Of a stretch of DNA of 64,000 nucleotides, positions 22,466 to 49,250 are shown one piece after another (position 1 is the first letter of the stretch; every line of letters begins with the position of its first letter). A program made the position numbers and the translations under genes. The stretch spans positions 62,001-126,000 of the IMG/VR virus record IMGVR_UViG_3300035703_000008, one strand, 5' to 3'. Below the pieces are notes generated by a model. That model did not search any database. It saw only the letters and a program-made list of their open reading frames with translations, and was not told the origin of the DNA.

Positions 22466-22717
22466 TTGATCAAGATACAGTTCCATTCGTTTGGCATGGG
22501 CGATGTCGAGGACCCGGAGCTCTATGCTGCCCATCCCATACGGGAATGGCAGAACACCGAACATGGTCAATGGGTCATGGAACACGGTCGTGACCTCACG
22601 TTCCACACGCAGGTAGACCACAACTCCATGGGCTACCGCGTTTTCATCACAGGATATCTACAAGAAGACATCCATGCCACAGAATATTTCCTAAGATGGC
22701 CCAAGGTAAAATACTAG
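22466..22717 (+). CDS. hypothetical phage protein
   Basis: 83-aa ORF (FGMGDVEDPELYAA...GQWVMEH) between thyX and the epimerase. Confidence 0.65.
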   Translation: MIKIQFHSFGMGDVEDPELYAAHPIREWQNTEHGQWVMEHGRDLTFHTQVDHNSMGYRVFITGYLQEDIHATEYFLRWPKVKY

Positions 22718-23670
22718 TCACCGGTGGACTTGGTTTCATCGGACACAATATAGTAGCACAGCTACAGGCTCTGGGTCATGCAATGGTCATCGTCGATGCT
22801 GTGTCAGACTATGGCATCATACCAAGAGATGAGCTAGAAGGTCTGGTAAGAGAACGAGCACGTCTCATCGATCAGACTGATCTCTATCTCACTGACATCA
22901 CAGATCCCGGCCTGGATCACATCTTCCAAGACCACGACATTGCCACAGTGATCCACTTGGCCAGTTTTCCCCGACAAAAAGTGGTTAATCGAGATCCAGT
23001 GTCGGGCAGTCGCGTCATGAGTGAAGGCCTGCTCAATCTCCTGGAACTCAGTGTTGCCCATCATGTTGATCGATTCGTGTATGTAAGTTCCAGCATGGTC
23101 TATGGTGAATTCACTGATGACACCACCGAAGACCATCCATGTGCTCCACAAGGACAATACGGGATCATGAAGCTGGCTGGAGAATGGCTCACACGCGACT
23201 ACACCCAACGCCGTGGCATGTCGCATGTGATCGTGCGTCCCAGTGCTGTGTACGGAGCCAGAGACGTGGAAGATCGCGTGGTCAGCCAGTTCATGATGGC
23301 TGCACATCGCGGCGAAACTCTACGAGTGCGTGGTGCCGGCGAGTGCCTAGATTTCACTGATGTGAGAGACACTGCACGCGGTATCGTTCTCGCTGCTGTC
23401 ACCCCTGCTGCTGCCAACAACACTTACAATATCACTCGTGGACGCGGTCGTAGCTTGCAGGAAGCCGCAGAGATCGCTGTAAAAATCTCAGGATCGGGCA
23501 CTATCGATGTTCTGGATCGCGATCCTTTGTTCCCCAGTCGGGGTGCATTAAATATAGATCGAGCCCGGAGAGATCTTAGCTTTGAACCCACTATAGACAT
23601 CGAGCAAGGCTTTGAAGACTACTACCGCTGGATTACGGATCCCATTCGCAGGTCTACCTCGTCAGTATAA
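22696..23670 (+). CDS. NAD-dependent nucleotide-sugar epimerase/dehydratase (extended SDR)
   Basis: ILVTGGLGFIG, HLAS, SSSMVYG, catalytic YGIMK (YxxxK), VRPSAVYG. Confidence 0.92.
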   Translation: MAQGKILVTGGLGFIGHNIVAQLQALGHAMVIVDAVSDYGIIPRDELEGLVRERARLIDQTDLYLTDITDPGLDHIFQDHDIATVIHLASFPRQKVVNRDPVSGSRVMSEGLLNLLELSVAHHVDRFVYVSSSMVYGEFTDDTTEDHPCAPQGQYGIMKLAGEWLTRDYTQRRGMSHVIVRPSAVYGARDVEDRVVSQFMMAAHRGETLRVRGAGECLDFTDVRDTARGIVLAAVTPAAANNTYNITRGRGRSLQEAAEIAVKISGSGTIDVLDRDPLFPSRGALNIDRARRDLSFEPTIDIEQGFEDYYRWITDPIRRSTSSV

Positions 23671-24739
23671 TACCCTGAGGTCAGAGATCCTTGACATCAC
23701 TGACCAGGTGTTGAGGTCAGGTCAAGTGATGTCTGGCAACTACACTGCCGAGTTCGAGCATTGGCTGGCACGCAAGAATAGATCAAAATTCGCGATCACG
23801 TGTCATTCTGGAACACAGGCCTTGGAGATCATCGCCGAGTTTTATCGTCAGCACTGGCCCTGCGATCCAGGACACACTCCCACGGTGGTCATGCCCAGCA
23901 TTTCTTATGTGGCCACTGCCAATGCATTTGTTCGAGCTAGATGGGATATAAGATTCGCTGATGTTGATGCCCATGGCATGCTTTCACTCAAGGACGTGCC
24001 CAACGATTCTCTCACACACTGGAATGCCATCTGCTTGGTGGGCTTGTATGGCCAGAGTGTGTATCAGTATTCAGACACACAGTTTTGGAAAAGTGTGCGA
24101 TACAAAAATCAAATCGTGATCGAGGATGGCGCCCAACATTGGCTCAGTGCCGGATCTTCGCGCATAGGGCATGCCACTGCCATAAGTTTTGATCCTACCA
24201 AAAATCTCGGCAACTACGGAAACGGTGGGGCGGTAGTCACCGACGACGAGGATCTAGCTACATTTGCACGAGCTTGGTGCGCGAATGGCAAGCCATATTA
24301 TCGCCAACCGGGCACCAACAGTAGGATGAGCGAAATAGATTGTGCCCAGATGTTGGTAAAAGTCAATCACTTGGACCAATGGCAGGTCCGTCGCCGGCAT
24401 ATCACTGAATACTGGTATAGTCGGCTGGCAGGAAAACGACAGGTGCGTAGTCTTGCAGATCTATCCAACATGGATACCCACTGTTTCCATAAATTTGTGA
24501 TTGATGCTGATCACAGGAATGACCTGCAAAGACATCTAAAAGAACACGGAATAGAAACTCGTGTACACTATGACCAGGCCTTGTTTGAACATGCTGGACT
24601 GAGTCAATTCATCAACCCCGGTGTGCTAAGTTCAGCGGCTTCGTTGTGTCGTCGTGTACTGAGCTTGCCACTCTACCCCGAACTCACGGATCTAGAAGTA
24701 GACTACATCATCGACCAGGTGATAGATTTCTCTTCATAA
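23612..24739 (+). CDS. DegT/DnrJ/EryC1/StrS-family PLP-dependent sugar aminotransferase
   Basis: SGTQAL, VATANA, IEDGAQ, SFDPTKNLGNYGNGG (PLP lysine), GTNSRMSE, VLSLPLYPEL. Confidence 0.93.
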   Translation: MKTTTAGLRIPFAGLPRQYNTLRSEILDITDQVLRSGQVMSGNYTAEFEHWLARKNRSKFAITCHSGTQALEIIAEFYRQHWPCDPGHTPTVVMPSISYVATANAFVRARWDIRFADVDAHGMLSLKDVPNDSLTHWNAICLVGLYGQSVYQYSDTQFWKSVRYKNQIVIEDGAQHWLSAGSSRIGHATAISFDPTKNLGNYGNGGAVVTDDEDLATFARAWCANGKPYYRQPGTNSRMSEIDCAQMLVKVNHLDQWQVRRRHITEYWYSRLAGKRQVRSLADLSNMDTHCFHKFVIDADHRNDLQRHLKEHGIETRVHYDQALFEHAGLSQFINPGVLSSAASLCRRVLSLPLYPELTDLEVDYIIDQVIDFSS

Positions 24740-27700
24740 ATGCATAGCTGGCCAACCAGGCCCACTCGTAGCTTTTCCTGAGCTGTTCAAAATCCCCACC
24801 GACTTCTTCGTAGTAGGCCACGGCATCTTCGGCTCCCCACACTGACCATTCGCCGTAGGGTCCTTCTCCACCAGTGAGCCAGGCACGGAGACGATATTCG
24901 TTTTCTACGTCAGGCAGACTGGCTCGTAGTTTGATCGCTTCGCGGAAGGCCGTGCGCCACGCAGTCCAGGCATCGGTGTTGTAGCGAGCCACACCCGACA
25001 TGATGGGCACTACTTCGTGTGCATCGTCTAGTGTGAAGTCCAAGCCACGACCGGGATTGGCCAACACCAGGTTCTTGTTGTAGGCGATCATGGCCTGGTG
25101 TCCATAGATCAAGCGATTCACAGGATTCCTAGCATGGAAGATGTAGTGCTTGGGCTGTTGCATGCGATCCGGCTGCCATGACCAGTCAAAGTCTGGATTC
25201 ACATCCAACTTGGCAAACACAGCAAAGAACCAAGGCGTTTCACTGGCTCGAGCAGCGGCATGATAAGCAGCAGCACGGCCCGGCACTCGATCCACTCGCA
25301 CCAAGCGGTTGGGTTGGCCTTGTTTGCGCAACATCAGGCTGCCCCAGTTTCGGTCAGCTTGGGGTTCTCCATTGGAGATGTAGACGATGTCCAAGGGCTG
25401 GCCTTTTAGTGTGTCGCGATGGCTGCGATCGATGTGGGGATAATCGTACATCTGTGTTCGAATGTAAGGTACAGCATTCTTGGGCACCACCACTACGCCA
25501 GCACCGGGATCCATGGGAATGATGGTCTTGGTCTTTTCTCTCCAGAGACTCACTGTGGGCATCTTGGCGTTGCCCACATCTCTGTTGGCGAACACGGCCA
25601 AGGGTCCCGAGAACGTGCTCGAGATCACTGTGTCCACATGCGTGTCCTGATCATTGCGGATCACTGGCATGGGCCAACGCGGTACTCTCTGATCTTCGCA
25701 GTAGTTCACGGTCTCAAACCAATCTAGCAGTTCCAGTTCGTTGATCTTGTCTCTCAACGCCCGCACAGGCACATAGAATGTGTCACCGAATTTCTGTTCC
25801 GCACTGGGGAACACGTGCAGCATGTCACGTTGCCAGGCTTCGGGTTGCCACGAGAAATCAAATCTCGAATAGTCGCATACACTGCCCGTCACCCATATGT
25901 GTTCGGCTTCGACGTCGGCGATCAAGCGTTTTAGAGTGTCAAGATAATTATCAAAGTATCTCGCGGTCTTGACCACGCGATAGCGACCCTGCAGGAACTC
26001 AATGGTCTTTGGTGCTTCGGCATTGCCAAAATCTATCACATAGATGTCCGAGGCATCGGCAGGTGCTACCACTTGTTGATCCTGCACAAAATTAAGATTG
26101 GGAAACTCTTCTATGCCCGCAGCCCACTTGGCGTGCCGCTCGAACTCCCAGCGATTGATCAGGAATGTGTCCGACCATTTGTTCCACTGGCTACCAAACA
26201 CGTGAGTCATGAAGCTCTGCCAGGGCTGTGCGTGCCAAGCGAAATCAAAGTCTGAGTAGTCGTTTTCGCTGCCTATGACCCAGAATCTCATGCTCTTGGT
26301 CTTGGTGAGACAGCGTTGTATGGTGTCCATCACAGAATTTACATAACGCACTTTTTGTATGTGAGGATACTGTTCGCGAAGGCGTTCAAACCTCGACGCG
26401 CTCATGGCATTGCTGCGATCCATGTAAAAAATATCCAATACACGCACCACGGATTGAGGCTGTTCTTGGATGATCTGTGGAGGATCGCCGGCAAACTTGA
26501 GATCTTGGGCTCCGGGCACAGTGTAGGTGAGTCCCACTGATGCTTGATATTCTGTACCGAAGTGGTAGATATAAGGCGGCTCTTGTGGGTCGGGTATCCA
26601 TGAATAGTCGATGACATCGGCATCTACTTCTTCGGGCACTGACCATCGCGCGCGATCAGGCAAGATGCGGGCCAGTGGTTCGGTCATGAACTTGCGCTCA
26701 GTGGCACCTGGCACATGATATTCAATGGTGCTCATCTGTGTGGCAGGCCACCACTGGTTGCCAAACACATAGATGTAAGGCGGTGAGCCAGGATCGGGCC
26801 GCCAGGAACGATCAAACTCGAACACATGATCAGTAGTCACTTGCCAACACTGATCGGTGGCAACAAGACGTGCCTGCGGTTCAGACATGAATTTGCGTTC
26901 TGTTGCCCCAGGAACGCGATATTCTACCGTGGGCATGATCTCTGCAGGCCACCACTGATTGCCGAACACATAGATGTAAGCGGGCGATCCAGGATCGGGT
27001 TCCCACGAGTAGTCAAACTCGCAGTCATAATGCGTGACGAACTCGTTGGGTCTGGCTGCGCGTCGTGCTCGCGGTTCCGACATGTACTTGATCTCTGTGG
27101 CTCCAGTCACACGATACTGCAAGGCCGGACGTTGTTCAGGTGTGAGCCATTGGTTACCAAACACATAGACGTAGGCGGGATCTGTGGGATTTGGGCGCCA
27201 CGAATAATCAAACTCTTCGATGTCATCCAACTGCTCCCAGGCCGAGACATCCTGTGCTAGAGTGGCCACCGGTTCTGCCATGTACTTGATCTCAGTGCCA
27301 CCTGTGTTGTATACCACAGTGGGTTCCAGCACAGCAGGGTTCCACTGGTTGCCAAACACATAGGTCATGGGAGGATCAAAGGGATTGGGTTCCCACGAGT
27401 AATCAAAGTCGCTGACAGCGAGATTGTGGCCAAACAACGCAGGCTGCGGCAGTCTGCGTGTGCGTGTGTCCATGTACTTGACTTCGGTGGCACCCGGTAC
27501 CGTATATCGCACACTGGCTTTGTATTCAGCCGGGTTCCACTGGTTGCCCCACACATAGATGTAGGCCGGATCCCGAGGATTGGGTCGCCAGGTCCAGTCC
27601 CAATCCTCTTCGGCTATGGGTTCGAGGATTTCCCAGTGATCGCGCGATTCTGACAACTGCGCTCGCGGTTCATCCACGAACTTTTCTTGAGTCGCTCCAG

Positions 27701-30062
27701 CCACACGATAACGAACAGTGGGCATGACAGTACCAGGATAATGCTGATTACCAAAAACATAGATGTAGGGTTCCTCTGTGGTGTCAGGATGCCAGCTAAA
27801 ATCAAAATCGGTGATAGATTCTAACACCTCCCAGTGATGATCCTGGGAGGCCTTCCTTTGATGCACAATGTCAACAAACTTGCGTTCTTGGGCTCCAGGA
27901 ACCACATAGCAGGCTCCGCCGTTTCTCTGCCACTGGGTGGCAAACTCATAGATGTAGGCAGGGTCGCCCGGATCGGGACACCAGGTATAGTCCACGGTGC
28001 TGTCGTCAATGACATCGGGCGTGACCCAGTTTTCGAGGTTGGGCAGCAGCCTAGGACCTCCGGTCATGTACTTGCGCTCAGTGGCGCCCGGTACACGATA
28101 TTCCAGGGTGGGCATCTTTTCTGCAGGCCAGTGTTGATTGCCCCACACATAGATATAGGCCGGATCTCGGGGGTGTGGTCTCCATGACCAATCAAACGAT
28201 GCATCGTCGATGCTGTGCAATCTGTGCCAATTGATCTGGCTGGCCGACAATGTGGCACGTGGAGACTCGTGGTATTTGCGTTCTTCCGCGCCGGGCATGT
28301 GGAATACGGGTCCACCTTCGTCGTACCATTGCGTGCCGAACTCGTGGGTGTAGAGCGGATCAAGTGGGTTAGGATGCCAGGTGTAGTCAAACCCCACAAT
28401 GTTGTCGGGCACGGACCACAACGACAAGTCCTTGATTGATCTCACCCGGGGAGATTCCAGCAACTTGACCTCTCCGGCTCCGGGTACTGTGTACGTGACG
28501 CCACTGGCTGGTTGATGCTGGCTGGGGAAGTGATAGATGTAGGCAGGTTCTAGGGGATTGGGATGCCAGGTATAATCCACACTATCGGCATTGATCCAAG
28601 CTGGCACCGACCATGGCTCACGATCTCGAGCATGTGCTACTACCTGGAAGGCGTCTACGAGCTTGATCTCTGTGGCCCCAGGTACAGTGTACGTGACACC
28701 ACTCACTGGTTGATGTTGATCTGGGAAGTGGTAGATGTAGGGCGGATCAAGTGGATTGGGATGCCAGGTGTAGTCAACGCCAGTGACTTCAGCAGGTACG
28801 TTCCATGCGGTATGTTCAACCCGAGTGGTCCTGACTTGGAAAGCATCCACCATCTTGATCTCTGTAGCCCCAGGTACTGTATAGGTAACGCCACTAATGG
28901 GTTGGTGTTGATCCGGGAAGTGATAGATGTAGGGCGGATCTAGTGGGTTTGGGTGCCAAGTATAGTCAACATTGTCTACAAATTCAGGCACCGTCCAGTA
29001 TTCGCGATTTTCTTTGATTGCCTTGGCTTGGAAGGCATCCACCATCTTGATCTCTGTAGCCCCAGGTACTGTGTAGGTAACGCCACTTACCGGTTGATGT
29101 TGATCCGGGAAGTGATAGATGTAGGGTGGGTCAAGTGGGTTTGGGTGCCAGGTGTAATCAATACCTACTACTCCATCGGGCACTGACCAGTTTGTGTTGT
29201 CTGTTTTTTTAGTGGTTACTTGGAAAGCATCTGTGAGCTTGATCTCCGTGGCACCAGCGACCGTATAGGTAACGCCACTTACCGGTTGATGTTGATCCGG
29301 GAAGTGATAGATGTAGGGTGGGTCAAGTGGGTTTGGGTGCCAGGTGTAATCAATACCTACTACTCCATCGGGCACTGACCAGTTTGTGTTGTCTGTTTTT
29401 TTAGTGGTTACTTGGAAAGCATCCGTGAGCTTGATCTCTGTGGCACCAGGCACTGTATAGGTAACGCCACTCACTGGCTGGTGTTGATCTGGAAAGTGAT
29501 AGATGTAGGGCGGATCCAGTGGGTTTGGATGCCAGGTGTAGTCGACGCCGGTGATGTGTTGTGGCACCATCCAATTGGTAGGATCAGGTCTGCGTTGTGC
29601 TCGTTGATCGTGTACCAGTTTCGTGCCAGCAGTGCCGGGATACACGGGCCCGCCTGCACTCTGCCACTGTGTACCAAAATGATATTCATAGTCGGGTTCA
29701 GCGAAATCTGGATGCCAAGAGTAATCGAACCCAGTAGTGCCACGTGTGTTGAGCCACACAGACTCGTCGGCACGTCGTGTTATGCGTCGATCCTGATGAT
29801 AGTTGGTGTCAGTGTAGCCTGATTTGGGCACTAGGTATGTGCCTGAGTCTCGCTGCCATTGGCTGGGCCATGCATGACGTTGATGGCTTTGCCAAGGCAC
29901 CGGCTCCCAAAGCCAATCCCACCCTTGATAGTCCGATAAGTAGTTTACGATCCAGAAATATCGAGTGCGACTCAGTTCGCAGGCTTCTTGGATCGATGCT
30001 GCAGATCGTTCATGCGGGAAAAGTCCCGGCTTCTTACCACTGATATAGAAAACATCAAACAT
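24708..30062 (-). CDS. 1784-aa multidomain protein: 17 tandem ~64-aa repeats flanked by glycosyltransferase-like domains
   Basis: Repeat core D(Y/F)xWxPxPxDPxYxYxF(G/P)xQ. The C-terminal domain (LDIVYISNGE...AYHAAA...WRTAFREAIKL) resembles the 46116 protein. Confidence 0.85.
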   Translation of the reverse strand: MFDVFYISGKKPGLFPHERSAASIQEACELSRTRYFWIVNYLSDYQGWDWLWEPVPWQSHQRHAWPSQWQRDSGTYLVPKSGYTDTNYHQDRRITRRADESVWLNTRGTTGFDYSWHPDFAEPDYEYHFGTQWQSAGGPVYPGTAGTKLVHDQRAQRRPDPTNWMVPQHITGVDYTWHPNPLDPPYIYHFPDQHQPVSGVTYTVPGATEIKLTDAFQVTTKKTDNTNWSVPDGVVGIDYTWHPNPLDPPYIYHFPDQHQPVSGVTYTVAGATEIKLTDAFQVTTKKTDNTNWSVPDGVVGIDYTWHPNPLDPPYIYHFPDQHQPVSGVTYTVPGATEIKMVDAFQAKAIKENREYWTVPEFVDNVDYTWHPNPLDPPYIYHFPDQHQPISGVTYTVPGATEIKMVDAFQVRTTRVEHTAWNVPAEVTGVDYTWHPNPLDPPYIYHFPDQHQPVSGVTYTVPGATEIKLVDAFQVVAHARDREPWSVPAWINADSVDYTWHPNPLEPAYIYHFPSQHQPASGVTYTVPGAGEVKLLESPRVRSIKDLSLWSVPDNIVGFDYTWHPNPLDPLYTHEFGTQWYDEGGPVFHMPGAEERKYHESPRATLSASQINWHRLHSIDDASFDWSWRPHPRDPAYIYVWGNQHWPAEKMPTLEYRVPGATERKYMTGGPRLLPNLENWVTPDVIDDSTVDYTWCPDPGDPAYIYEFATQWQRNGGACYVVPGAQERKFVDIVHQRKASQDHHWEVLESITDFDFSWHPDTTEEPYIYVFGNQHYPGTVMPTVRYRVAGATQEKFVDEPRAQLSESRDHWEILEPIAEEDWDWTWRPNPRDPAYIYVWGNQWNPAEYKASVRYTVPGATEVKYMDTRTRRLPQPALFGHNLAVSDFDYSWEPNPFDPPMTYVFGNQWNPAVLEPTVVYNTGGTEIKYMAEPVATLAQDVSAWEQLDDIEEFDYSWRPNPTDPAYVYVFGNQWLTPEQRPALQYRVTGATEIKYMSEPRARRAARPNEFVTHYDCEFDYSWEPDPGSPAYIYVFGNQWWPAEIMPTVEYRVPGATERKFMSEPQARLVATDQCWQVTTDHVFEFDRSWRPDPGSPPYIYVFGNQWWPATQMSTIEYHVPGATERKFMTEPLARILPDRARWSVPEEVDADVIDYSWIPDPQEPPYIYHFGTEYQASVGLTYTVPGAQDLKFAGDPPQIIQEQPQSVVRVLDIFYMDRSNAMSASRFERLREQYPHIQKVRYVNSVMDTIQRCLTKTKSMRFWVIGSENDYSDFDFAWHAQPWQSFMTHVFGSQWNKWSDTFLINRWEFERHAKWAAGIEEFPNLNFVQDQQVVAPADASDIYVIDFGNAEAPKTIEFLQGRYRVVKTARYFDNYLDTLKRLIADVEAEHIWVTGSVCDYSRFDFSWQPEAWQRDMLHVFPSAEQKFGDTFYVPVRALRDKINELELLDWFETVNYCEDQRVPRWPMPVIRNDQDTHVDTVISSTFSGPLAVFANRDVGNAKMPTVSLWREKTKTIIPMDPGAGVVVVPKNAVPYIRTQMYDYPHIDRSHRDTLKGQPLDIVYISNGEPQADRNWGSLMLRKQGQPNRLVRVDRVPGRAAAYHAAARASETPWFFAVFAKLDVNPDFDWSWQPDRMQQPKHYIFHARNPVNRLIYGHQAMIAYNKNLVLANPGRGLDFTLDDAHEVVPIMSGVARYNTDAWTAWRTAFREAIKLRASLPDVENEYRLRAWLTGGEGPYGEWSVWGAEDAVAYYEEVGGDFEQLRKSYEWAWLASYAFMKRNLSPGR
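26520..29740 (-). repeat. in-frame tandem repeat array (~192-nt period, 17 units)
   Basis: 17 occurrences of the repeat core counted in the translation. Units at 29081 and 29273 are identical over roughly 150 nt. Confidence 0.85.
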
Positions 30063-35584: not shown

Positions 35585-35682
35585 TTGTAGATAAATGGAT
35601 CTCTTTTGCGCAGCTCTTTGAGCTTTTTACGATAACGTATTTCTAGCTTGATCTTGTTGATGAGATTGATTAACCATTTCAT
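35581..35682 (-). CDS. small basic protein, 33 aa, coupled to the carbamoyltransferase
   Basis: MKWLINLINKIKLEIRYRKKLKELRKRDPFIYK*, with an ATGA overlap. Confidence 0.65.
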   Translation of the reverse strand: MKWLINLINKIKLEIRYRKKLKELRKRDPFIYK

Positions 35683-35704
35683 GGCAGTTTCCTTGTAAAA
35701 TCTG

Positions 35705-42269: not shown

Positions 42270-43599
42270 ACCAATCTTTCAGTCGTGGAAAAGTCGCGGC
42301 AAAGTCTTTGCCGCGACGTTGATCATACTGTTGATAAAACAAGCGAAAATCGTTGTGCAGTTTAGACATCTCGAATGCATCAGAATGCGGAGTCTTGACC
42401 ACATCAAGGTAGTCAACTAGTCTCTGTAAATGATTGATCTCGTGCTCGTGCATGTAATCACAACCTTTGTGGCGCACCATAAATTCAGCGAGACGATCCT
42501 TGTAATAGCTGCGCAATTCATCGGGCAGCACCAATGGCGATTGGAAGCTAGGGAACCGCAGGATGTTTAAGGTAAAGTTCACACGTTCGCGGCCGTACTG
42601 CTTTTTGAATTCGATCACTTGTTCGAGATACTCAGGCAAGCTGTCTAGACACAGGGCATTGATGGTACACATACTGTGTACGGCACGTATGTGATCGTGC
42701 TCTAGTAATTCTCGCATGTTGCCTAGCCAAACATTATAATCGATACCGTCTCGTATGTATTCGCTTTGTGCACCAACCGCTTCGTTGCTGGTATAGATTT
42801 CCACATGAGACAACCCAGCTACGCTGTCCAGGAACTCTAGGAGCCTTTCCTTTTCCAAGGCGAGGTTAGAGTTGATGGCCAATTTCGTCGAGCAGCGACC
42901 TTGATTCTCCTTGAACCAGTCAAGTAACTGCCACATATAGCCGGACATGAGCGGTTCGCCGCCGGTGATGCGTAGTTCTTCGAGCGTACGGTGTAGGTCT
43001 GATTCCCACCACTCAAAGAACGCGCGGATATATGGATTATCCTCACCAAAGCGATATAACTGGGCACTATCATGAGTGTGAGTAAAATGGTTTCGACCAT
43101 CAGATACCAGTCCCCGATAAGGACCGGAATTCTTAATATCCTTAACCCATGTACTAGAAAAAGCAGGATTACAGTAAGAGCAAGCCAGTTGGCAAGTGCG
43201 ATCAAAGGCAATTTCCAGCGTGCGGAGATTGACATCCACGCTTGGATCAAGTTGGCTTGCATGATGTAGAGTCTGGATCGGGTAGATTCGGCTTTTATAT
43301 ACGCGATCTGATATTGCGTCCCGCCCCATGTCTTCAATCTTCCAGCAATACTCGCAACCAGGTGGTCTTCGACCCGCTTGCATGTCAGCTCGATCTTGTT
43401 TTTTAGCTGGTGTATTGTGGAGAGCACGTGGATTGATCTGGACATCTTCTATACTTATTTTGTGTGCGGGAGGATGGTGGCAGCTGGTGGTCATACCGGA
43501 GCCGAGCCAAATGGTGGCATTGTACCATTTGGCGCCACAAAAACTGTCGGATATGGTGTCTAGCACCTGTTGTCGGAATTCTAGATCGTTCATTGGCAA
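42241..43599 (-). CDS. radical SAM protein with an N-terminal Cys/His cluster
   Basis: CQLACSYC, TGGEP; FCGAKW...SCHH...CEYC. Confidence 0.9.
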   Translation of the reverse strand: MPMNDLEFRQQVLDTISDSFCGAKWYNATIWLGSGMTTSCHHPPAHKISIEDVQINPRALHNTPAKKQDRADMQAGRRPPGCEYCWKIEDMGRDAISDRVYKSRIYPIQTLHHASQLDPSVDVNLRTLEIAFDRTCQLACSYCNPAFSSTWVKDIKNSGPYRGLVSDGRNHFTHTHDSAQLYRFGEDNPYIRAFFEWWESDLHRTLEELRITGGEPLMSGYMWQLLDWFKENQGRCSTKLAINSNLALEKERLLEFLDSVAGLSHVEIYTSNEAVGAQSEYIRDGIDYNVWLGNMRELLEHDHIRAVHSMCTINALCLDSLPEYLEQVIEFKKQYGRERVNFTLNILRFPSFQSPLVLPDELRSYYKDRLAEFMVRHKGCDYMHEHEINHLQRLVDYLDVVKTPHSDAFEMSKLHNDFRLFYQQYDQRRGKDFAATFPRLKDWYDSIQLQFS

Positions 43600-44756
43600 T
43601 GGGGTTGGGTAAACTTCTGTAGTCGATCGGGAAACTCGGCCTGAATCTGTGGCACGAGTGCATTCAAGTGTTGCTGATTGTATTTACACACCTCTCGACA
43701 AGCATCAAGGAAAGCCGAGAGGTCTTGGCGACAAAGATCCTCGACAATGTCGGTGATGCGTTCAACTCGTGCCTGATTGTCGTCGATGAGATCAAAACTT
43801 TCATCAATGACATGGTTGAATGTACGGAATCCTAGATCCTGCATGTCGCGATAAAAGCCTCGGTTGGCCACTGCTATCCAAGGGTGTGCCATGGCCAAGG
43901 GCTTGGCTATTTTCTCGGTGCGGAAACTATAGGGATAATCAAACACTGTTTCTGTGATCAAACTGAAATAGGTATCGATATAGGGTTCAGGACGGAGATA
44001 GATTTCGCCCCAGTCATCACCAAATAGATGGAACTTGACAAACTGAACTCCTTGAGGCACGGGTTCAGCTAGTTTAGCACGATATGTGTCAACTTCATAG
44101 TTTTCTGGCAAATACTGTACGGGACGATCCTCTAGCATGAGATTGCGCCCGTCTTGTTCCAGTCGAAGAATGCGACTGTTAAATCCTTTTCCTTCGAGAC
44201 AACTCCATAGACTCTGATCCAGCAGTCCCGAACTACGGAATCGTTCCATGAGATACTTGCGATGTGGTCGTGCCCGACCATTCAGGAACAGGAACTTGTA
44301 GGGCTTGATCTTTTTCTTGAAGATTTCACCTGACAACAAAAATGCCGAATGATTTTCGTGATATTTTAGGACTTGGGCCAGGAATGCATCATAACGTAGA
44401 CATGTGTAACCGGGTTCCATGTCTCCGCCGCCGATTACCAGTATGTGTCCTGCTAGTATGAGATCTTCCAGGCCCATCATGCGCATCTGCCAACGAAAGG
44501 TTTCTGATCCCTCGGCTGGATTGCTGATGATTACCAATGATCCTGGTCGTTGGGCTAGATCTCGCACCTTGGATGTGTTTTCTTTGCACTGCTGTCGTCC
44601 AATGAGATAGATGCTGTTGTCTACTGGTTCATGGGAAGAGAAATCCCAGAATTCGATGTCGGCTAGATGCGCTATCAGCTCGTAGACTTCGCAGTGAGTA
44701 TCGATGATGAGTTTACGACCGTTGAGCATGTGCTCTGCACTCCTCCCACCAGGCAC
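43590..44756 (-). CDS. glycosyltransferase-like protein (TEKxxKP family)
   Basis: FSLITETVF...RTEKIAKPLAMAHPW...DLGFRTFNHVIDESFD. Start probably at MLNGRK. Confidence 0.65.
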   Translation of the reverse strand: MPGGRSAEHMLNGRKLIIDTHCEVYELIAHLADIEFWDFSSHEPVDNSIYLIGRQQCKENTSKVRDLAQRPGSLVIISNPAEGSETFRWQMRMMGLEDLILAGHILVIGGGDMEPGYTCLRYDAFLAQVLKYHENHSAFLLSGEIFKKKIKPYKFLFLNGRARPHRKYLMERFRSSGLLDQSLWSCLEGKGFNSRILRLEQDGRNLMLEDRPVQYLPENYEVDTYRAKLAEPVPQGVQFVKFHLFGDDWGEIYLRPEPYIDTYFSLITETVFDYPYSFRTEKIAKPLAMAHPWIAVANRGFYRDMQDLGFRTFNHVIDESFDLIDDNQARVERITDIVEDLCRQDLSAFLDACREVCKYNQQHLNALVPQIQAEFPDRLQKFTQPHCQ

Positions 44757-46122
44757 GCATCTCAGGGAACGTGGCTAGAAAATTGGTGCCACGACGGCGA
44801 TCATGTTCGTTGAAAAATCTATAGAAGTCGGCCCGGGCCACAATGTTGTCTTGTTCTTGGCCTCGACGCATCCAAGCAAGATCCCGATCCAGACGCTGGC
44901 ATTCGTAGTCTTTGAAGCCCTGAAAACGTGTGGCTTCGGTTTCTTGGTTGGTCAGCATCCAGTCACGTATACGCTCCACCCGGGCGGCATAGCTCTCGGG
45001 CAGGATCTGCAGGCTCTGCCAGGCAGGTTGTCGCAGTACAGGTGTGTCAAACCAAACTCGCTGATAGGTCTTGCTGTGACGTCGGCGTAGATTCAGGATC
45101 TCGGCCAGGAATCGATCCAGGCTGGTCACTGATAGATTGTTCATGGTGATGATGAATGTGAGGCTGCTGCGATATGGAACTTGTTCAAGGAACTGTTCCA
45201 CTCGGCTCCACATGAGATCAAAGTCCAGACCATGCCGCATGTATTCAGCCTGTGATCCCCAGCCATCCACGCTGACATATTGCATGTAGTGTTCTACACG
45301 ATCCTGTTCGGTGATGCGTTTGACATAGTCGAGATATCGATCAAACAGTTTCTGCTCCACTGAGAAATTGGATGTGACATTGAGATGCAGTCGGGGATTG
45401 AGATGTTCCAACACATAATCAAACACACGATAGGTGTTGCGGTCCATCAATGGCTCGCCGCCGGTCATGCGGAAGTGTTCCAGTTCAGGATACAGGTCCG
45501 GCCACCAGCGCCAGAATGCTTCCACATATGGATTGTGTTCTCGATGTGGGATAGGTCTGCGTTCGCCTTCGAAATGAGTGAGTTGGTTGTGCGGCACACT
45601 GGTAGGGTAAGCACCTTCGCGCTGTATCTCGTCCATCCAACTGCTGGAGAATTGCGGGCTACAATAGCTGCACCGGAGATTACATGCCGAGTTGAAATTG
45701 ACTTCTACATAACTGGGTGTGGCATCTTGGTCCCAGGGCGCCGACATGATGGCATGGAAATCTCGTGCTGCCCAGGGCTCGCCAGATCTGTAATGACGAT
45801 CACTGAGCTTGCCATTGTCCTCCATGTTCCAGCAGTATTGACATTCTGGGGGACGTTGACCTTGTTTCATCATCAGACGCTGTTGCTTTTTATGGGCAGT
45901 GTTATGGATACCACTGGCGCTGCGACCGATATCCTCGAGAGTGATGCGATGCAAGGGAGGGTGATAGCAACTGTTGGTATGCCCTGTGGTGAGATGCAGG
46001 CTGACCTGTTTCCATTTGGCCAAGCACATGGCGTCGCCGAGGTCCTCCTTCATCTGCTCAGCGGAACTCAGAAACTTGCTCTTTCCTTCTTGTGTGACTT
46101 CGTCACCTTTGTTGTTTACCAA
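44713..46122 (-). CDS. radical SAM protein with an N-terminal Cys/His cluster
   Basis: CNLRCSYC, TGGEP; MCLAKW...SCYH...CQYC. Confidence 0.9.
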   Translation of the reverse strand: MVNNKGDEVTQEGKSKFLSSAEQMKEDLGDAMCLAKWKQVSLHLTTGHTNSCYHPPLHRITLEDIGRSASGIHNTAHKKQQRLMMKQGQRPPECQYCWNMEDNGKLSDRHYRSGEPWAARDFHAIMSAPWDQDATPSYVEVNFNSACNLRCSYCSPQFSSSWMDEIQREGAYPTSVPHNQLTHFEGERRPIPHREHNPYVEAFWRWWPDLYPELEHFRMTGGEPLMDRNTYRVFDYVLEHLNPRLHLNVTSNFSVEQKLFDRYLDYVKRITEQDRVEHYMQYVSVDGWGSQAEYMRHGLDFDLMWSRVEQFLEQVPYRSSLTFIITMNNLSVTSLDRFLAEILNLRRRHSKTYQRVWFDTPVLRQPAWQSLQILPESYAARVERIRDWMLTNQETEATRFQGFKDYECQRLDRDLAWMRRGQEQDNIVARADFYRFFNEHDRRRGTNFLATFPEMRAWWEECRAHAQRS

Positions 46123-47039
46123 CCTTCTTGTCTCCGGATCACATCAATCTCACGCACCATGATGCCTTGGTTATGCCAGTTACCACGATAGTGATGTTTG
46201 AAGAAACGGCTCTGGTCGGGATTCAGGGTGCATACTGGAAGATCCAACTGTGTTCGTAGAGCATTGGCATAGGTCTCGGCGGCTTCGTATGGGTCCACAT
46301 ACTGTTCTACCTCCCAGAGTTTTTCCAGGGCATCAAACCATTGCACTTCTCGATAGTCCCAGTCCGTGAGCATGGTCATGTATGTGCCCATCCTGGCGCC
46401 CATTATGGCCCAGATACCATGTTCGACGTCGTCTCCTACATTGTGCCACACTGTGAGATTGTCGAGATTCCTGTGATGTACACGATCGCGGAATTCGCTG
46501 AGACTGGGTCTTGCACCTTTGTTGAGGCACATCTTGACACCTTCACGGAAACCCGCACGCCAGGCATGCTTGGCGGATCCGTTGGGATGGGTAGTAGAAT
46601 AACAATCATGCATGGGCCAATACAAGGGATCGAAACAAAATTCGACCACTGTCTCGTCCCTGCCATCAGTGTTTTCATGTGTTTTCATACCAAGCACAAA
46701 CTCGCGTGTCCACGAACTCATACCACCGTTACCGTACATGAGTCCATTGATCTCATTCCTGGCTCGCCAACGGAACACAGCCTGTTCCCATTCTCGGGTA
46801 GGCATGTCCAAGATCAGGTTAAAGAACTCAGGGTCAGGCATGTTGTCGCCATCGATGAGTATGAATCGTTCGGTGTCCGAAGCTTCGGCTGCGGCCTTGT
46901 GTGCAGCATCTGAGCCCTTGACTCCATCTACACGTTTGGCCCAAGGTACCATGTTGCGTATTCGAACCCAGAATTCTTCTTTCTGCGGTTCGTCGTAGCT
47001 GAGATAGATACAATCAAGATCGGCTACATCAATTTTCAT
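46116..47039 (-). CDS. GT-A-like glycosyltransferase
   Basis: DCIYLSYDEP, RVDGVKGSDAAHKAAA, FILIDGDN (DxD), YGNGG, AWRAGFREGVKM. Confidence 0.65.
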   Translation of the reverse strand: MKIDVADLDCIYLSYDEPQKEEFWVRIRNMVPWAKRVDGVKGSDAAHKAAAEASDTERFILIDGDNMPDPEFFNLILDMPTREWEQAVFRWRARNEINGLMYGNGGMSSWTREFVLGMKTHENTDGRDETVVEFCFDPLYWPMHDCYSTTHPNGSAKHAWRAGFREGVKMCLNKGARPSLSEFRDRVHHRNLDNLTVWHNVGDDVEHGIWAIMGARMGTYMTMLTDWDYREVQWFDALEKLWEVEQYVDPYEAAETYANALRTQLDLPVCTLNPDQSRFFKHHYRGNWHNQGIMVREIDVIRRQEGW

Positions 47040-47454
47040 AGGTTTTCTTCCATTTCGTATGAGCAGTGACAGGATCTACTACAACGCTGACATCCCTCGG
47101 GTGGCACGGTGTGCCCGAATCTCTGGGTCTCAATTTTCCCACCCCAGTGCCAGTGTCTAACAATACCAGTCGACCATCTACCACACGCACATTCCTGGAG
47201 CTTTGTGCATAAGTGGCCTGGTCGATGTCTATGTAATTACCGGGCAGATCTTCTTGGCTGTAGAATAAAGGATTGCCTTGATCATCATAGTATAAGCGAT
47301 AAAGAATCGGCTGTGCTTCTTGGCCTTGGGTAAGACGCGCTACCTCGGCCCAGAAATCTTCGGCTTCGCTCATGTCCAATCCTTGTGATAGTAGTGTACC
47401 AGCCCCCACTGTGCCACAGTATTGATCCTTAGACCTGGCTGTGTTTTTTCCCAC
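47029..47454 (-). CDS. hypothetical protein
   Basis: ORF in operon context. The true start is probably near MSEAEDF (47373). Confidence 0.6.
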   Translation of the reverse strand: MGKNTARSKDQYCGTVGAGTLLSQGLDMSEAEDFWAEVARLTQGQEAQPILYRLYYDDQGNPLFYSQEDLPGNYIDIDQATYAQSSRNVRVVDGRLVLLDTGTGVGKLRPRDSGTPCHPRDVSVVVDPVTAHTKWKKTYEN

Positions 47455-48104
47455 ACCAGTTCTTGACGCCAGTCATCAGTGGCTGTGCCGATGATGTTCT
47501 TTTTCATGTGTACTATGCGTGGAGTCACTGATGCAGGTAAGGTCACTGTTTCAGGACCAAGTATCTGTGCAGCCATGGCATAAACCACGTCTGTGGTGGG
47601 TTCATTTTCGGGCATGATCAGCATGCTGCGAAACTTGGACCAGTTGTCAAAGATCGATCTCACCGTGGCAAAAAATTGCTGTGCAGTGCGACTCAGCCTC
47701 CAGTAGGTCACAGCATTGTAGACATCGGGCAACCCATTGGCGTCAAACACCCGTCGATACCTGCGGTCTTTGCCGACTTGATCATAGTAGTCGCGGCAGC
47801 CTTGGCTGATGACCACATCCCGGTGTTCAAACAAGGCCCAGAGATGATCTATGGCACTGGCACACCACATGTCGGCTTCCAGCTTGATGGTCTGTCGATA
47901 GGGAGAAATCTCGAACATCTGCCAGTCATTGGCGAATCCGCCTTGATCACCGTGGGGAAGTTGATCCCGGGTGACTATGGTTATGTCGGCCGCGGGATGC
48001 CATTCGCGTATGGTGCGTGCCAGTTGTTCAGCGCAGGCCACATAGTCGCAGTCATCGGTGTTGATGGCCGGTATCAGATAGCCACGTTCAGCTCGTACTG
48101 GCAA
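47370..48104 (-). CDS. nucleotide-diphospho-sugar transferase-like (GT-A) protein
   Basis: RGYLIPAIN...DYVACA...SPYRQTIKLEADM; paralogue of 48088. Confidence 0.6.
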   Translation of the reverse strand: MPVRAERGYLIPAINTDDCDYVACAEQLARTIREWHPAADITIVTRDQLPHGDQGGFANDWQMFEISPYRQTIKLEADMWCASAIDHLWALFEHRDVVISQGCRDYYDQVGKDRRYRRVFDANGLPDVYNAVTYWRLSRTAQQFFATVRSIFDNWSKFRSMLIMPENEPTTDVVYAMAAQILGPETVTLPASVTPRIVHMKKNIIGTATDDWRQELVWEKTQPGLRINTVAQWGLVHYYHKDWT

Positions 48105-48951
48105 TGATGTCTCCTAGATGTTTTTTGCCCATGGCATGGAAATCATGATCGGCGATGTCAACCCATCGGGCGCGTCCGTCTTGAGCTCGATAGTCTACTC
48201 GGAAATGATCGTCACTGATCTGGCTCAGTCGGGAATCCGGCATTACCGATGCTAGATCCCAGGCTATGGCATTCTGGTTTCCTGTGTGGCCCGACAGTAT
48301 ATTGAGCGCGATGCTGAGAGCATGATCGTTGCGATAGGTACGACTGTTGATACCGTAGAGATCTTTGTAATGTACCCAATTTTCTTTGACCATGTTCATG
48401 ACACCAAAAACGTGATCAGCCACTGCTCCTTTGCGGAACATCATCACTGTGGCCCAAGACATGGGCATGCGAACACGTCCAAAATAATTGAGATCTTCGT
48501 GACCGGGCCTGGCAGCCACATCATAGGCCCAGCGATGGCAGAGAAAGTCTTCGCTGCTGTCTAACAACAGTCTCAATCGATCGCTGGCCACTACATAGTC
48601 AGCGTCTAAGACCAGGGTCTGTCGCCAGGGAGTGAACAAGTTGGCATCACAACGATTGTGATTGTACCAGGTCACAGAAGCGTCGAGATCTTCGAAGTAT
48701 CTACGAGTATCGTGTTCATAACGCTCGATGTCCAAGACTCGATCAAACATCTTCATGCCGCGAGTACTAGCATCAGTGACCACACATACTGGGATATCTA
48801 GATGTCGATGTATGCGTTCAGCGCTCCATGCAGCCATCCGTAGATAATCAATGCCTTCGTTGTTGATGGCGAAGATTAGAGCACCAACACTCATCGCTTT
48901 TTCTGCGCTTCCTGGTGCTCCAACAGCCAAGCTGTCATCTGCTCTTGCCAT
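48088..48951 (-). CDS. nucleotide-diphospho-sugar transferase-like (GT-A) protein
   Basis: GALIFAINN..IDY...PVCVVTD...TPWRQTLVLDADY (DxD), RNDHALSIA. Start probably at MSVGAL (48894). Confidence 0.65.
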   Translation of the reverse strand: MARADDSLAVGAPGSAEKAMSVGALIFAINNEGIDYLRMAAWSAERIHRHLDIPVCVVTDASTRGMKMFDRVLDIERYEHDTRRYFEDLDASVTWYNHNRCDANLFTPWRQTLVLDADYVVASDRLRLLLDSSEDFLCHRWAYDVAARPGHEDLNYFGRVRMPMSWATVMMFRKGAVADHVFGVMNMVKENWVHYKDLYGINSRTYRNDHALSIALNILSGHTGNQNAIAWDLASVMPDSRLSQISDDHFRVDYRAQDGRARWVDIADHDFHAMGKKHLGDIIASTS

Positions 48952-49228: not shown

Positions 49229-49250
49229 AAAGGGCCACTAGGGCCCTTTT
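49229..49250. terminator. bidirectional intrinsic terminator
   Basis: AAAGGGCC-ACTAG-GGCCCTTT with T-rich tails on both strands. Confidence 0.7.

Follow-up and report, generated by a model that had tools for sequence, protein, structure and literature searches.

Why would a giant phage keep a long run of sugar-transferring and sugar-modifying genes directly beside its tail genes, and what would such a run of genes build? The question is raised by a 26-kb block at positions 22696-48951 of a 64,000-nucleotide stretch of an uncultivated virus genome (the window). A first-pass annotation described this block as an unusually large, apparently self-contained glycosylation toolkit that builds a heavily modified glycan and attaches it to the virion, or remodels host LPS or DNA. 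Important first steps include establishing whether the listed genes are present, how widely their arrangement is shared, and which acceptor is the most plausible.

Gene content of the block

The observation itself holds up: an open reading frame map places the first gene start at 22696 and the last gene end at 48951, and all of the listed enzymes are present, with only the ‘SGNH-like’ call lacking support. Four genes belong to recognizable sugar-tailoring families. The SDR (22696..23670, plus strand) is a GalE-like, NAD-dependent protein of the sugar epimerase/dehydratase family that matches Pfam Epimerase at 2.4e-42. It carries the motifs SSSMVYG and YGIMK but no TDE dehydratase signature, and its NCBIfam matches to GalE (1e-30) and dTDP-glucose dehydratase (2.5e-30) are both below the cut-offs. 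It is followed by a DegT/PseC/WecE-type PLP sugar aminotransferase (23612..24739, plus; Pfam DegT_DnrJ_EryC1 6.6e-58), for which the best NCBIfam hits are PseC (2e-36) and dTDP-4-amino-4,6-dideoxygalactose transaminase (4e-33). An arginine:X amidinotransferase of the AGAT/StrB1/HsvA/SxtG superfamily (32314..33339, plus) matches AGAT at 6.5e-16 and StrB1 at 4.3e-14 in a PDB sequence search, with the C-terminal catalytic Cys aligned, and has a median identity of 83% to orthologues in related phages. The NodU/TobZ-family carbamoyltransferase (34103..35584, minus) has Kae1-like and YrdC-like domains (Pfam Carbam_trans_N 7e-33, Carbam_trans_C 1e-50). Its best isolate relative is RsoM2USA at 43%, and it is present in 27 of 34 full loci.

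The five radical SAM enzymes, all on the minus strand, each carry CxxxCxxC and an N-terminal four-Cys twitch domain, and all match NCBIfam NF033640 above the cut-off, at 1e-83 to 5e-125. Enzyme 1 (37483..38793; motif CNFKCRTC) matches at 1e-83, or 282 bits against a cut-off of 170, and enzyme 2 (39757..40983) at 3.8e-97. Enzyme 3 (40980..42269; 4.6e-125) is very highly conserved, with 7861 homologues at E<=1e-10 and the 120 listed top cluster representatives at about 71-98% identity. Enzyme 4 (42241..43599; 4.3e-90) and enzyme 5 (44713..46122; 1e-93) have orthologues in RsoM2USA, namely gp202 (1.7e-151) and gp349 (3e-97). A sixth member of the family lies outside the block at 2595..3911 (plus; 4e-81).

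The glycosyltransferase-like (GT-like) families could have proved to have non-GT folds, a result that would have counted against the first-pass reading; structure prediction and fold searches instead gave GT folds. Four paralogues form one GT-B-like family, at 30061..31173 and 31157..32317 (both plus) and at 38780..39760 and 43590..44756 (both minus). The first three carry the exact motif TEKTFKP and the fourth carries TEKIAKP. The third was modelled with AF2 (pLDDT 91.1), and Foldseek returned EXT1/EXT2, H. pylori FucT (2nzw), FUT9 and SenB, giving a GT10/GT47-like GT-B fold. For the first paralogue, only viral clusters were found in the Atlas, and the nearest Pfam family is Glyco_transf_10. 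At least 233 unnamed homologues were found for the third.

Three GT-A-like proteins follow on the minus strand. The protein at 48088..48951 (motif DAD) resembles Nucleotid_trans/GT8 models, with Atlas structure matches to PF03407/PF01501 clusters at TM 0.61/0.70, and RsoM2USA gp353 matches it at 4e-28. The protein at 47370..48104 (phrog_1903) is its paralogue (hhalign 99.1%, E 1.3e-18), with EAD in place of DxD. The third (46116..47039) is GT2-like with a DGD motif and a median identity to orthologues of 71%; its nearest Atlas clusters are auto-named ‘Glycosyltransferase 2-like’, and RsoM2USA gp350 matches at 7.6e-72. It is homologous to the C-terminus of a 1784-aa protein (24708..30062, minus; hhalign 99.8%, E 2e-27). 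This giant protein has a small N-terminal alpha/beta domain, about 17 repeats of roughly 65 aa (motif F-D-x-S/T-W-x-P ... Y-I-Y-x-F-G-N-Q) and then tandem GT-A-like domains. A 192-nt DNA period occurs 4.7 times at 28641-29543, and 898 representative clusters are homologous. An AF2 model of residues 1339-1784 has a pLDDT of 95, and Foldseek returned only GT-A/GT2 structures, the top hits being K4 chondroitin polymerase, PcManGT, WrtF, RmlT, ArnC, GtrB and SunS. However, TM-scores in the Foldseek searches for this model and the GT-B model are modest, at 0.2-0.5, and the last GT-A domain of the giant protein lacks DxD, with FAK aligned to the DGD of the GT2-like protein.

The remaining genes of the block have no family assignment. 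The 258-aa protein annotated as ‘SGNH-like’ (33336..34112, minus) has an N-terminal GDS motif but no Pfam, NCBIfam, PHROG or PDB match, and an orthologue was found in only 1 of 34 loci. A conserved 380-aa protein (36420..37562, minus) always lies between the last radical SAM gene and the carbamoyltransferase with its neighbouring mini-protein (described below). It has many invariant His, Glu and Asp residues and is present in 27 of 34 loci, but no Pfam, NCBIfam, PHROG or PDB match was obtained even with a 25-sequence profile. A 141-aa protein (47029..47454, minus), whose true start is probably internal, also has no family match but is syntenic in 74 of 74 fibre-adjacent loci.

Two further features had been overlooked by the first-pass annotation. 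The gene at 35705..36421 (minus), 239 aa in relatives, is broken here by a 1-nt deletion near 36049/36050, as seen by comparison with the intact orthologue at 13284-14003 of a related locus (L001). A related metagenome contig has an extra A behind 36049, while an independent assembly of the source sample does not. The second is an unannotated basic mini-protein of 33 aa (35581..35682, minus; ORF 35682-35584), whose stop overlaps the carbamoyltransferase start (ATGA). Its C-terminal 21 residues (LEIRYRKKLKELRKRDPFIYK) are nearly invariant across phages. It is present in all 31 syntenic loci examined, at least 120 viral contigs carry the exact core, and codon-position entropies of 7.7/2.9/21.7 show coding selection; the ORF is under strong purifying selection. 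Family and literature searches gave no match. Other metagenomes show a depth spike on exactly this segment. The mini-protein opens a peptide-centred alternative, in which the block makes a peptide-scaffolded product, and SPASM/twitch radical SAM enzymes do more often act on peptides.

Conservation beside the tail-fibre genes

The clustering is far beyond chance. The same gene order recurs in dozens of independent viral contigs. Gene order is conserved in 27 of 34 full loci, with enzyme identities of 58-83%. In 74 of 74 related loci, a giant protein, baseplate, 511-aa fibre and 330-aa fibre genes are followed by the GT-A block on one strand. The block is not unusual for its lineage, contrary to the first-pass annotation, but is a standard, vertically conserved cassette, fixed downstream of the distal tail-fibre genes, of a large clade of uncultivated Rak2/Atu_ph07/RsoM2USA-like jumbo myoviruses. 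However, synteny within one clade is largely inherited and so is weak evidence of functional coupling. The radical SAM module is also absent from some relatives that keep the fibres and the GT-A block, so the two modules may serve different ends.

The placement of the minus-strand genes directly downstream of the tail-fibre and baseplate genes is correct in position. The nearest gene (49271..50263, minus) encodes a 330-aa fibre-tip-like protein with 32% Ser+Thr, the candidate glycan acceptor, which lies immediately upstream of the GT-A block in 74 of 74 loci. Next to it lies a tail fibre (50273..51808, minus) with a C-terminal intramolecular-chaperone (Peptidase_G2-like) domain (Pfam 3.4e-5), PHROG tail-fibre and virion hits, and homology to Atu_ph07 gp176 (phmmer 5.6e-54). 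However, a consensus scan places a terminator-like hairpin (49229..49249, minus), followed by a promoter-like site (49231-49203), in the 320-bp gap between the fibre gene and the cassette.

Nor is the cassette self-contained, as had been suggested. No sugar-nucleotide-activating enzyme and no 4,6-dehydratase signature were found, so host NDP-sugars are needed. Besides the sixth radical SAM gene, whose orthologue in another phage (L290) sits directly beside the SDR and DegT genes, an Fpr-type ferredoxin/flavodoxin-NADP+ reductase (462..1202, plus; NCBIfam PRK10926 9.4e-41) lies outside the block. It is a probable electron supplier for the radical SAM enzymes, and in two other phages it directly follows the mini-protein ORF. 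Also outside is a NeuD/PglB/VioB-family sugar N-acetyltransferase-like protein (11859..12590, plus), with a Pfam Hexapep match and an NCBIfam TIGR03570 match (3.1e-19) below the cut-off.

What the cassette may build

The first-pass interpretation is partly supported: the enzymes form a coherent sugar-tailoring set and the link to the tail-fibre genes is real and deeply conserved, but the choice among virion, host LPS and DNA rests on indirect evidence. No cassette protein has a transmembrane-like segment, and no flippase, polymerase or lipid-carrier transferase appeared in any family search, which argues against classical LPS or capsule remodelling. Host-surface remodelling is one of the rival readings. 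The TEKTFKP family is also almost confined to viruses. Only 3 loci were found in 185,579 species genomes, all carrying phage cassette genes, so it is not a recently borrowed host LPS gene. DNA modification is a further rival, but nothing in the cassette looks like a DNA-base modification enzyme. Virion protein is therefore the leading, though unproven, acceptor.

What the analysis establishes is the enzyme inventory: nine or more glycosyltransferase-fold domains (four GT10/GT47-like GT-B proteins, two GT8-like and one GT2-like GT-A proteins, and the giant protein with tandem GT-A domains), the epimerase-type SDR, the 4-aminotransferase-type DegT enzyme, the amidinotransferase, the O-carbamoyltransferase-family enzyme and the five twitch radical SAM enzymes, all soluble as judged from the lack of membrane segments. 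Their activities and the pathway are inferred. In our tentative reading, this is a phage-specific cytoplasmic glycan assembly and tailoring system. Host nucleotide sugars would be epimerized, and oxidized or rearranged by the radical SAM enzymes, by analogy with BtrN, the twitch radical SAM dehydrogenase of butirosin biosynthesis. They would then be transaminated, with the amine converted to a guanidino group and hydroxyls carbamoylated. A free aminoglycoside-like metabolite is another rival for the product of such a pathway. The GT set would then build an oligo- or polysaccharide on a phage-made soluble acceptor, most likely the Ser/Thr-rich fibre proteins encoded immediately upstream, giving glycan-coated tail fibres. 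The Fpr-type reductase may supply electrons, and the mini-protein would be an essential component whose role has no assignment in this scheme.

Known systems offer parallels for this reading. A cultured but distantly related phage, Ralstonia RsoM2USA, carries a compact version of the cassette, in which the same GT-A block plus a radical SAM gene follows the fibre genes. Mycobacteriophage virions are glycosylated by GTs encoded next to structural genes, and the capsid or fibril glycans of chloroviruses and mimivirus are made by virus-encoded GTs and 4-amino-6-deoxy-sugar pathways.

Genomic setting and enzyme families of the cassette

The cassette lies on IMG/VR contig UViG_3300035703_000008, which is 208,932 bp long and comes from a subsurface metagenome. 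A megablast of 20 kb against GenBank phages gave no match, and there is no close DNA relative among sequenced phage isolates. However, three structural genes place the virus in the Rak2 / PA5oct / Atu_ph07 / RsoM2USA group of jumbo myoviruses, namely the 3783-aa virion protein at 52632-63983, the 201-aa baseplate-associated protein and the 511-aa fibre protein, which has an intramolecular-chaperone domain. This placement is supported by PHROG phrog_10938 and tail-fibre families, by tblastn matches at 29-53% identity to those phages, and by phmmer matches to Atu_ph07 gp176 and gp177.

The first-pass annotation had described a 26-kb sugar-tailoring region beside the tail genes, and this observation held for every listed component except one. 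An ORF map reproduced its boundaries (22696-48951) exactly. The SDR epimerase was confirmed (Pfam Epimerase, 2.4e-42), and NCBIfam places it equally near GalE and RmlB, with a GalE-like SSSMVYG...YGIMK active-site pattern. The DegT aminotransferase was also confirmed (6.6e-58) and lies nearest PseC/WecE-type 4-aminotransferases; its listed TTG start overlaps the SDR gene by 59 nt (23612-23670), and the true start is probably further downstream. The carbamoyltransferase has both TobZ/NodU domains, with Carbam_trans_N and Carbam_trans_C scoring 114.9 and 171.8 bits against Pfam cut-offs of 24 and 27, but it does not reach the NodU equivalog cut-off (132 against 1000) and is therefore a family member rather than NodU itself. 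The amidinotransferase matches AGAT at 6.5e-16 and StrB1 at 4e-14 (4.3e-14), with the C-terminal catalytic Cys and the H-x-D segment aligned. The exception is the protein called SGNH-like (33336-34112), which has only an N-terminal GDS motif and gave nothing in searches of Pfam at E<=1, NCBIfam and the PDB.

The five radical SAM proteins, each with CxxxCxxC, were confirmed as well. All five, together with a sixth at 2595-3911, belong to NCBIfam NF033640, 'twitch domain-containing radical SAM protein', scoring 273-418 bits against a curated cut-off of 170. In this family the auxiliary-cluster domain lies N-terminal to the core, and here the Pfam SPASM hits cover residues about 10-100, before the Radical_SAM hit. 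The six paralogues share four invariant N-terminal Cys (C34, C53, C95 and C98), the CX3CX2C motif (C149, C153 and C156) and GGEP, which contains the GGE SAM-binding motif; binding of an auxiliary Fe-S cluster is inferred from these residues. One member, encoded by the gene at 40980, has 7861 homologues at E<=1e-10, and the 120 listed top cluster representatives are about 71-98% identical to it. Literature searches on the family name and on radical SAM enzymes in phages returned nothing relevant, and we found no paper that describes a function for the family. An Fpr-type ferredoxin/flavodoxin-NADP+ reductase (9.4e-41) encoded at 462-1202 (+), outside the cassette, is a plausible reductant supply for the six enzymes.

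The first-pass annotation had named non-GT folds as a finding that would count against it, and we therefore examined the folds of the GT-like proteins. The motif TEKTFKP is exact in three proteins and is TEKIAKP in a fourth, and the four are paralogues at 23-27% identity. An AlphaFold2 model of the paralogue at 38780-39760 has a pLDDT of 91, and its best PDB matches are exostosin EXT1/EXT2 (GT47), H. pylori alpha-1,3-fucosyltransferase (2nzw) and human FUT9 (GT10), and SenB. These have probabilities of 0.99-1.0 and TM-scores of 0.38-0.50, with E-values of 1e-4 to 1e-3 for the EXT1/2, FucT and FUT9 hits, which indicates a GT-B fold. There is no sequence-level membership in Pfam Glyco_transf_10 or Exostosin (no Pfam hit at E<=0.01), and a PDB profile search was empty, so we file the family as GT10/GT47-like in fold and not as a member. 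A tblastn search of the TEKTFKP protein against phage isolates gave no match. In 39 sequences R152, E210, K222 and K225 are invariant and T220 and E221 nearly so, although any equation of these with the donor-binding Arg and Glu-Lys pair of FucT is by analogy rather than by superposition. Of the GT-A-like proteins, g48088 structurally resembles nucleotide-diphospho-sugar transferase / GT8 clusters (PF03407/PF01501 models, TM 0.61/0.70) and has a DAD motif, and g47370 is its paralogue (hhalign 99.1%) with an EAD motif. A model of the C-terminal 446 residues of the giant protein has a pLDDT of 95 and matches only GT-A/GT2 structures, with the two-domain K4 chondroitin polymerase first, then PcManGT, WrtF, RmlT, ArnC, GtrB, SunS/ThuS and PBCV-1 A64R. 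The third GT-A protein, g46116, is homologous to that domain (hhalign 99.8%, E 2e-27), and its DGD motif aligns with FAK in the giant protein. Within the giant gene, a 192-nt period repeated 4.7 times at 82% identity (28641-29543) points to recent expansion of the 64-aa repeat units, and homologues range from about 170 to 2248 aa. The families are therefore GT-like and not of non-GT fold, with the caveat that the TM-scores are modest. Other searches were less informative: single-sequence PDB searches for the three GT-A proteins gave no credible match, PDB profile searches gave only insignificant hits (E >= 0.16) for the GT2-like protein and none for the conserved 380-aa protein U380, PHROGs gave almost nothing for the unknown proteins, and NCBIfam and Pfam gave nothing for U380, the 141-aa protein U141 and the proteins g20925 and g4906.

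This set of enzymes raises the possibility of a free specialised metabolite, in which the cassette would make an aminoglycoside- or aminocyclitol-like pseudo-oligosaccharide carrying guanidino and carbamoyl groups, used for host takeover or against competitors. The families mirror aminoglycoside pathways: StrB1-type amidinotransferase, TobZ-type carbamoyltransferase, StsC/BtrS-type DegT, twitch radical SAM like BtrN, and GTs. Upstream, at 7722-12590 (+), the phage encodes a metabolite/H+ MFS symporter, two adenylate-forming (benzoate/acyl-CoA ligase-like) enzymes and a NeuD/PglB/VioB-like sugar acetyltransferase (3e-19), which may extend the tailoring pathway and which, like the reductase, are conserved in the nearest relative (which has one ligase). 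A cyanophage paper called a similar gene trio 'antibiotic synthesis genes' (PMC12801897). However, no cyclitol synthase, resistance gene or dedicated exporter lies inside the cassette, nine or more GT domains and a polymerase-like giant protein are excessive for a small molecule, and the invariant placement behind the fibre genes is left unexplained. We consider this reading improbable.

Conservation of the cassette and its link to the tail fibres

The cassette is conserved and is not a one-off. The nearest relative, an ENA contig of 341 kb at about 67% amino-acid identity, carries the whole block in the same order, and a scan of IMG/VR with the TEKTFKP alignment gave more than 522 viral hits. 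Among 34 loci with full 10-kb flanks, 33 contain N-twitch radical SAM genes (typically five), 27 contain the carbamoyltransferase and U380, 23 contain the giant protein and 20 contain g46116-like genes. The gene order is essentially fixed: [fibre] GT8-like, GT8-like paralogue, U141, GT2-like, rSAM, GT-B, rSAM, rSAM, rSAM, GT-B, rSAM, U380, mini-ORF, carbamoyltransferase, [amidinotransferase, GT-B, GT-B on the other strand], giant protein, [DegT, SDR]. The tailoring enzymes are as conserved as core genes, with median identities of 83% for the amidinotransferase, 50-72% for the radical SAMs, 71% for GT2-like and 62% for the carbamoyltransferase, while the GT-B paralogues are the most variable at 32-46%. 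A 286-aa protein encoded at 20925-21785 (+), with no family match, has homologues inside the radical SAM module in several related phages (for example, the loci L007, L017 and L087) and may be a displaced member of the cassette. Across 185,579 species genomes the GT-B family appears in only three loci, two of which lie on long contigs (L087 and L088, 183 kb and 148 kb) of one 'Haliscomenobacter sp.' MAG. Both carry the complete cassette and are probably jumbo-phage contigs binned with a Bacteroidota genome, which may be a clue to the host.

Centring the search on the GT8-like gene, 74 of 74 loci with enough upstream sequence show the same order on one strand: giant protein, 201-aa baseplate protein, 511-aa fibre, 330-aa fibre, then the GT-A block. 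The cultured Ralstonia phage RsoM2USA shares only 28-43% identity, yet it has giant protein gp361, an SDR gp358 and a fibre-like gp355, followed by gp353 and gp352 (GT8-like), gp350 and gp348 (GT2-like) and gp349 (N-twitch radical SAM, 3e-97). It also has a second module elsewhere, made of radical SAM gp202, gp200 and carbamoyltransferase gp199. The RsoM2USA paper does not annotate these genes, and its virion proteomics does not list them. In our contig a terminator-like hairpin (49249-49229) and a promoter-like site lie in the 320-bp gap after the fibre gene, and some relatives keep the fibres and the GT-A block but lack the radical SAM module. The cassette is therefore probably two modules. 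Other radical SAM sets occur in isolated phages. At the equivalent position after the fibre gene, Agrobacterium phage Atu_ph07 (record 115997-123646) has three radical SAM genes alongside a cupin-like gene and a 296-aa protein ending in a Cys/His-rich tail (CHSSCHASCH), which may be a peptide- or protein-modifying set. We considered whether these radical SAM genes might be homologues of ours and rejected this, as they are conventional C-terminal-SPASM enzymes with no phmmer match. In Vibrio phage K566 (record about 161548-168284), four N-twitch radical SAM genes alternate with hypothetical proteins of 310-360 aa that do not match the TEKTFKP profile, forming another uncharacterised radical SAM cassette.

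Several features bear on the acceptor. The 330-aa fibre protein directly upstream is 32% Ser+Thr, so that GT genes lie adjacent to structural genes that include a Ser/Thr-rich protein. In another phage (L290), two N-twitch radical SAM genes abut the SDR and DegT genes, which fits radical SAM action on sugars; BtrN is the precedent, generating a ketone for a DegT-family transaminase. Alternatively, the enzymes may alter host LPS, capsule, S-layer or flagellar glycans during infection, for example to block superinfection, as was proposed for GTs in the host-recognition clusters of pelagimyophages. GT8- and GT2-type enzymes, DegT/SDR pairs and carbamoyltransferases are typical of O-antigen and capsule loci, and similar GT and radical SAM genes near tail fibres have been interpreted this way (PMC7029224). 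However, none of the cassette proteins has a transmembrane-like segment, and no flippase, polymerase, ligase or lipid-carrier (polyprenyl-phosphate) transferase family was detected in the cassette, which argues against classical LPS or capsule pathways. The GT-B family is also virtually absent from cellular genomes, and enzyme identity of 58-83% across phages that presumably infect different hosts fits a phage-internal substrate better. Host-surface remodelling is thus possible but unlikely. Less likely still is attachment of the sugars to modified bases of the phage genome to evade restriction. Phage GTs classically glycosylate hydroxymethyl-pyrimidines, radical SAM and PLP enzymes occur in thymidine hypermodification clusters, and a ThyX gene lies next to the cassette. 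However, ThyX is an ordinary dTMP synthase, and no hydroxymethylase, DNA-base (5-hmdU) kinase, DpdA/TGT or aGPT-Pplase-type gene was found among the proteins scanned, which come from only 64 kb of a contig of at least 209 kb. The GT families found are glycan-type, and the source DNA assembled normally, although this last point is weak evidence.

A near-invariant 33-residue ORF and a frameshifted neighbour

Two features were missed by the first-pass annotation. The first is an unannotated, basic 33-aa ORF at 35682-35584 (35581-35682, - strand), whose stop overlaps the carbamoyltransferase start and which is translationally coupled to it. It is present in all 31 syntenic loci examined, and its C-terminal 21 residues are almost invariant although the flanking enzymes are only 35-70% identical. 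In 30 distinct DNA versions, the summed entropy over codons 13-33 is 7.7, 2.9 and 21.7 at codon positions 1, 2 and 3, a clear signature of a translated gene under strong purifying selection. We considered that the conservation might reflect an RNA element and rejected this because variation is concentrated at third codon positions. Its C-terminal core, KELRKRDPFIYK, is invariant in at least 120 viral contigs, which carry the exact 12-residue core in one copy each. In two unrelated metagenomes, contig depth rises 3- to 10-fold on the mini-ORF core only (35588-35634), so many different phages in unrelated soil and other metagenomes share this short segment. The mini-protein has no Pfam or NCBIfam match, and a literature search on the peptide core returned nothing relevant.

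The second is a conserved gene between U380 and the mini-ORF (36421-35705, - strand), which encodes 239 aa in the relative and is split here by a 1-nt deletion near 36049/36050. An assembly artefact is unlikely, because an independent assembly of the source run shows the same sequence, while a related metagenomic population carries an extra A behind 36049 that restores the frame.

The mini-protein suggests the main rival to a glycan pathway, in which it would be a precursor or carrier on which the five twitch radical SAM enzymes make cross-links or other radical modifications. The amidinotransferase and carbamoyltransferase would modify its lysines (to homoarginine or homocitrulline) and the GTs would then glycosylate the product, following a RiPP, PQQ or mycofactocin logic carried by a phage. 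The peptide is Lys-, Arg- and Tyr-rich with invariant E14, Y17, D28 and Y32, and AGAT-family enzymes can amidinate lysine. SPASM/twitch enzymes are typically peptide maturases, as weak NCBIfam side-hits to SkfB, PapB, YhhB and MftC-type models suggest. Of 50 peptide loci with enough upstream sequence, 31 have radical SAM genes within 6 kb, but the other 19 show no recognised radical SAM gene within that distance upstream. The gene that starts at the peptide's stop codon also varies, being the carbamoyltransferase in 57 of 105 cases, a DUF6071/GDSL-like gene in 28 and the Fpr-like reductase in 2. Pfam and NCBIfam scans of the cassette proteins revealed no RiPP recognition element (RRE), leader peptidase or exporter. 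RsoM2USA has the radical SAM and carbamoyltransferase genes, but no such peptide was found nearby, and the peptide could instead be a small accessory subunit. We regard this reading as unlikely but not excluded. If true, a bacteriophage would encode a complete machine that turns a ribosomal peptide into a heavily cross-linked, glycosylated product, a phage RiPP or cofactor-like molecule possibly attached to or acting with the tail fibres.

Interpretation and comparison with known systems

The best-supported reading, which we hold tentatively, is a phage-autonomous cytoplasmic glycan assembly and tailoring system whose product is attached to a phage-made acceptor, most plausibly the Ser/Thr-rich fibres. 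The proposal of the first-pass annotation, a dedicated pathway that builds a heavily modified glycan and attaches it to the virion, or remodels host LPS or DNA, is thus supported only in part. What the analysis establishes are the enzyme families, the GT-like folds of the models, the fixed gene order behind the fibre genes and the coding selection on the mini-ORF, whereas the catalytic activities, the glycan itself and its attachment to any acceptor are inferred. If the cassette glycosylates tail fibres, a whole clade of environmental jumbo phages builds a chemically exotic sugar coat (amino, guanidino, carbamoyl and radical-modified) on its host-recognition organelle, which would bear on host range, immune and defence evasion, and virion stability. 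It would also assign a first function to three large, essentially virus-only protein families that have thousands of metagenomic members and no annotation: the N-terminal-twitch radical SAM family, the TEKTFKP GT-B family and the repeat/multi-GT-A giant proteins. The invariant mini-protein provides a new, easily testable handle, and the compact version of the locus in the cultured phage RsoM2USA makes the question accessible at the bench.

GT and radical SAM genes near tail fibres have been noticed before. In the 'host recognition cluster' of pelagimyophages and cyanomyophages (PMC7029224), in T4-like marine viral genomes with up to 12 radical SAM genes (PMC5332604) and in cyanophage S-SCSM2R with its 'antibiotic synthesis genes' (PMC12801897), GTs, DegT-type aminotransferase, amidinotransferase and radical SAM genes cluster with tail-fibre genes in large aquatic myoviruses, without an established function. 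Those regions are described as hypervariable, while here the order is rigidly conserved, and the family-level identities (N-twitch radical SAM, GT10/47-like GT-B, the mini-protein) and the fixed architecture were not reported there. We therefore view the cassette as virus-encoded glycosylation machinery of inferred function that differs from earlier examples in these respects.

In mycobacteriophage virion glycosylation loci, GTs and methyltransferases next to capsid and tail genes modify Ser/Thr-rich extensions. As there, phage-encoded soluble GTs sit beside structural genes, next to a Ser/Thr-rich structural protein, and assembly would be cytoplasmic. However, the present cassette, for which glycosylation is inferred, has about 20 genes rather than 1-4, including five radical SAM enzymes, amidino- and carbamoyltransferases, a multi-GT-A giant protein and a conserved mini-protein. 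Giant viruses also encode their own multi-enzyme sugar tailoring and GT sets for a virion surface structure. For example, chlorovirus PBCV-1 capsid glycans are made by A64R and others, and Mimivirus and Megavirus have fibril glycan clusters with 4-amino-4,6-dideoxy-sugar pathways. PBCV-1 A64R is among the structural hits of our GT-A domain, and an SDR + DegT (+ NeuD/VioB-like) logic is present here, but this is a bacterial virus, and radical SAM, guanidino and carbamoyl chemistry has not been described for those systems.

Mycofactocin and PQQ pathways combine a small precursor peptide, a SPASM radical SAM enzyme and, for mycofactocin, a GT2 glycosyltransferase. The resemblance lies in a short conserved peptide with invariant Glu/Asp and Tyr residues next to SPASM/twitch-type radical SAM enzymes and GTs, but any relation is hypothetical, as no RRE chaperone, peptidase or flavoenzyme homologues were detected and the five radical SAMs are of a different subfamily. 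Finally, the enzyme superfamilies of aminoglycoside biosynthesis, BtrN (twitch radical SAM dehydrogenase), BtrS/StsC (DegT family), StrB1 (amidinotransferase) and TobZ (carbamoyltransferase), occur together here as well, with StrB1 a direct sequence hit and both TobZ-family domains present. The cassette differs from these pathways in that the twitch domain is N-terminal rather than C-terminal, no cyclitol synthase is present, there are far more GTs, and the context is a phage structural region.
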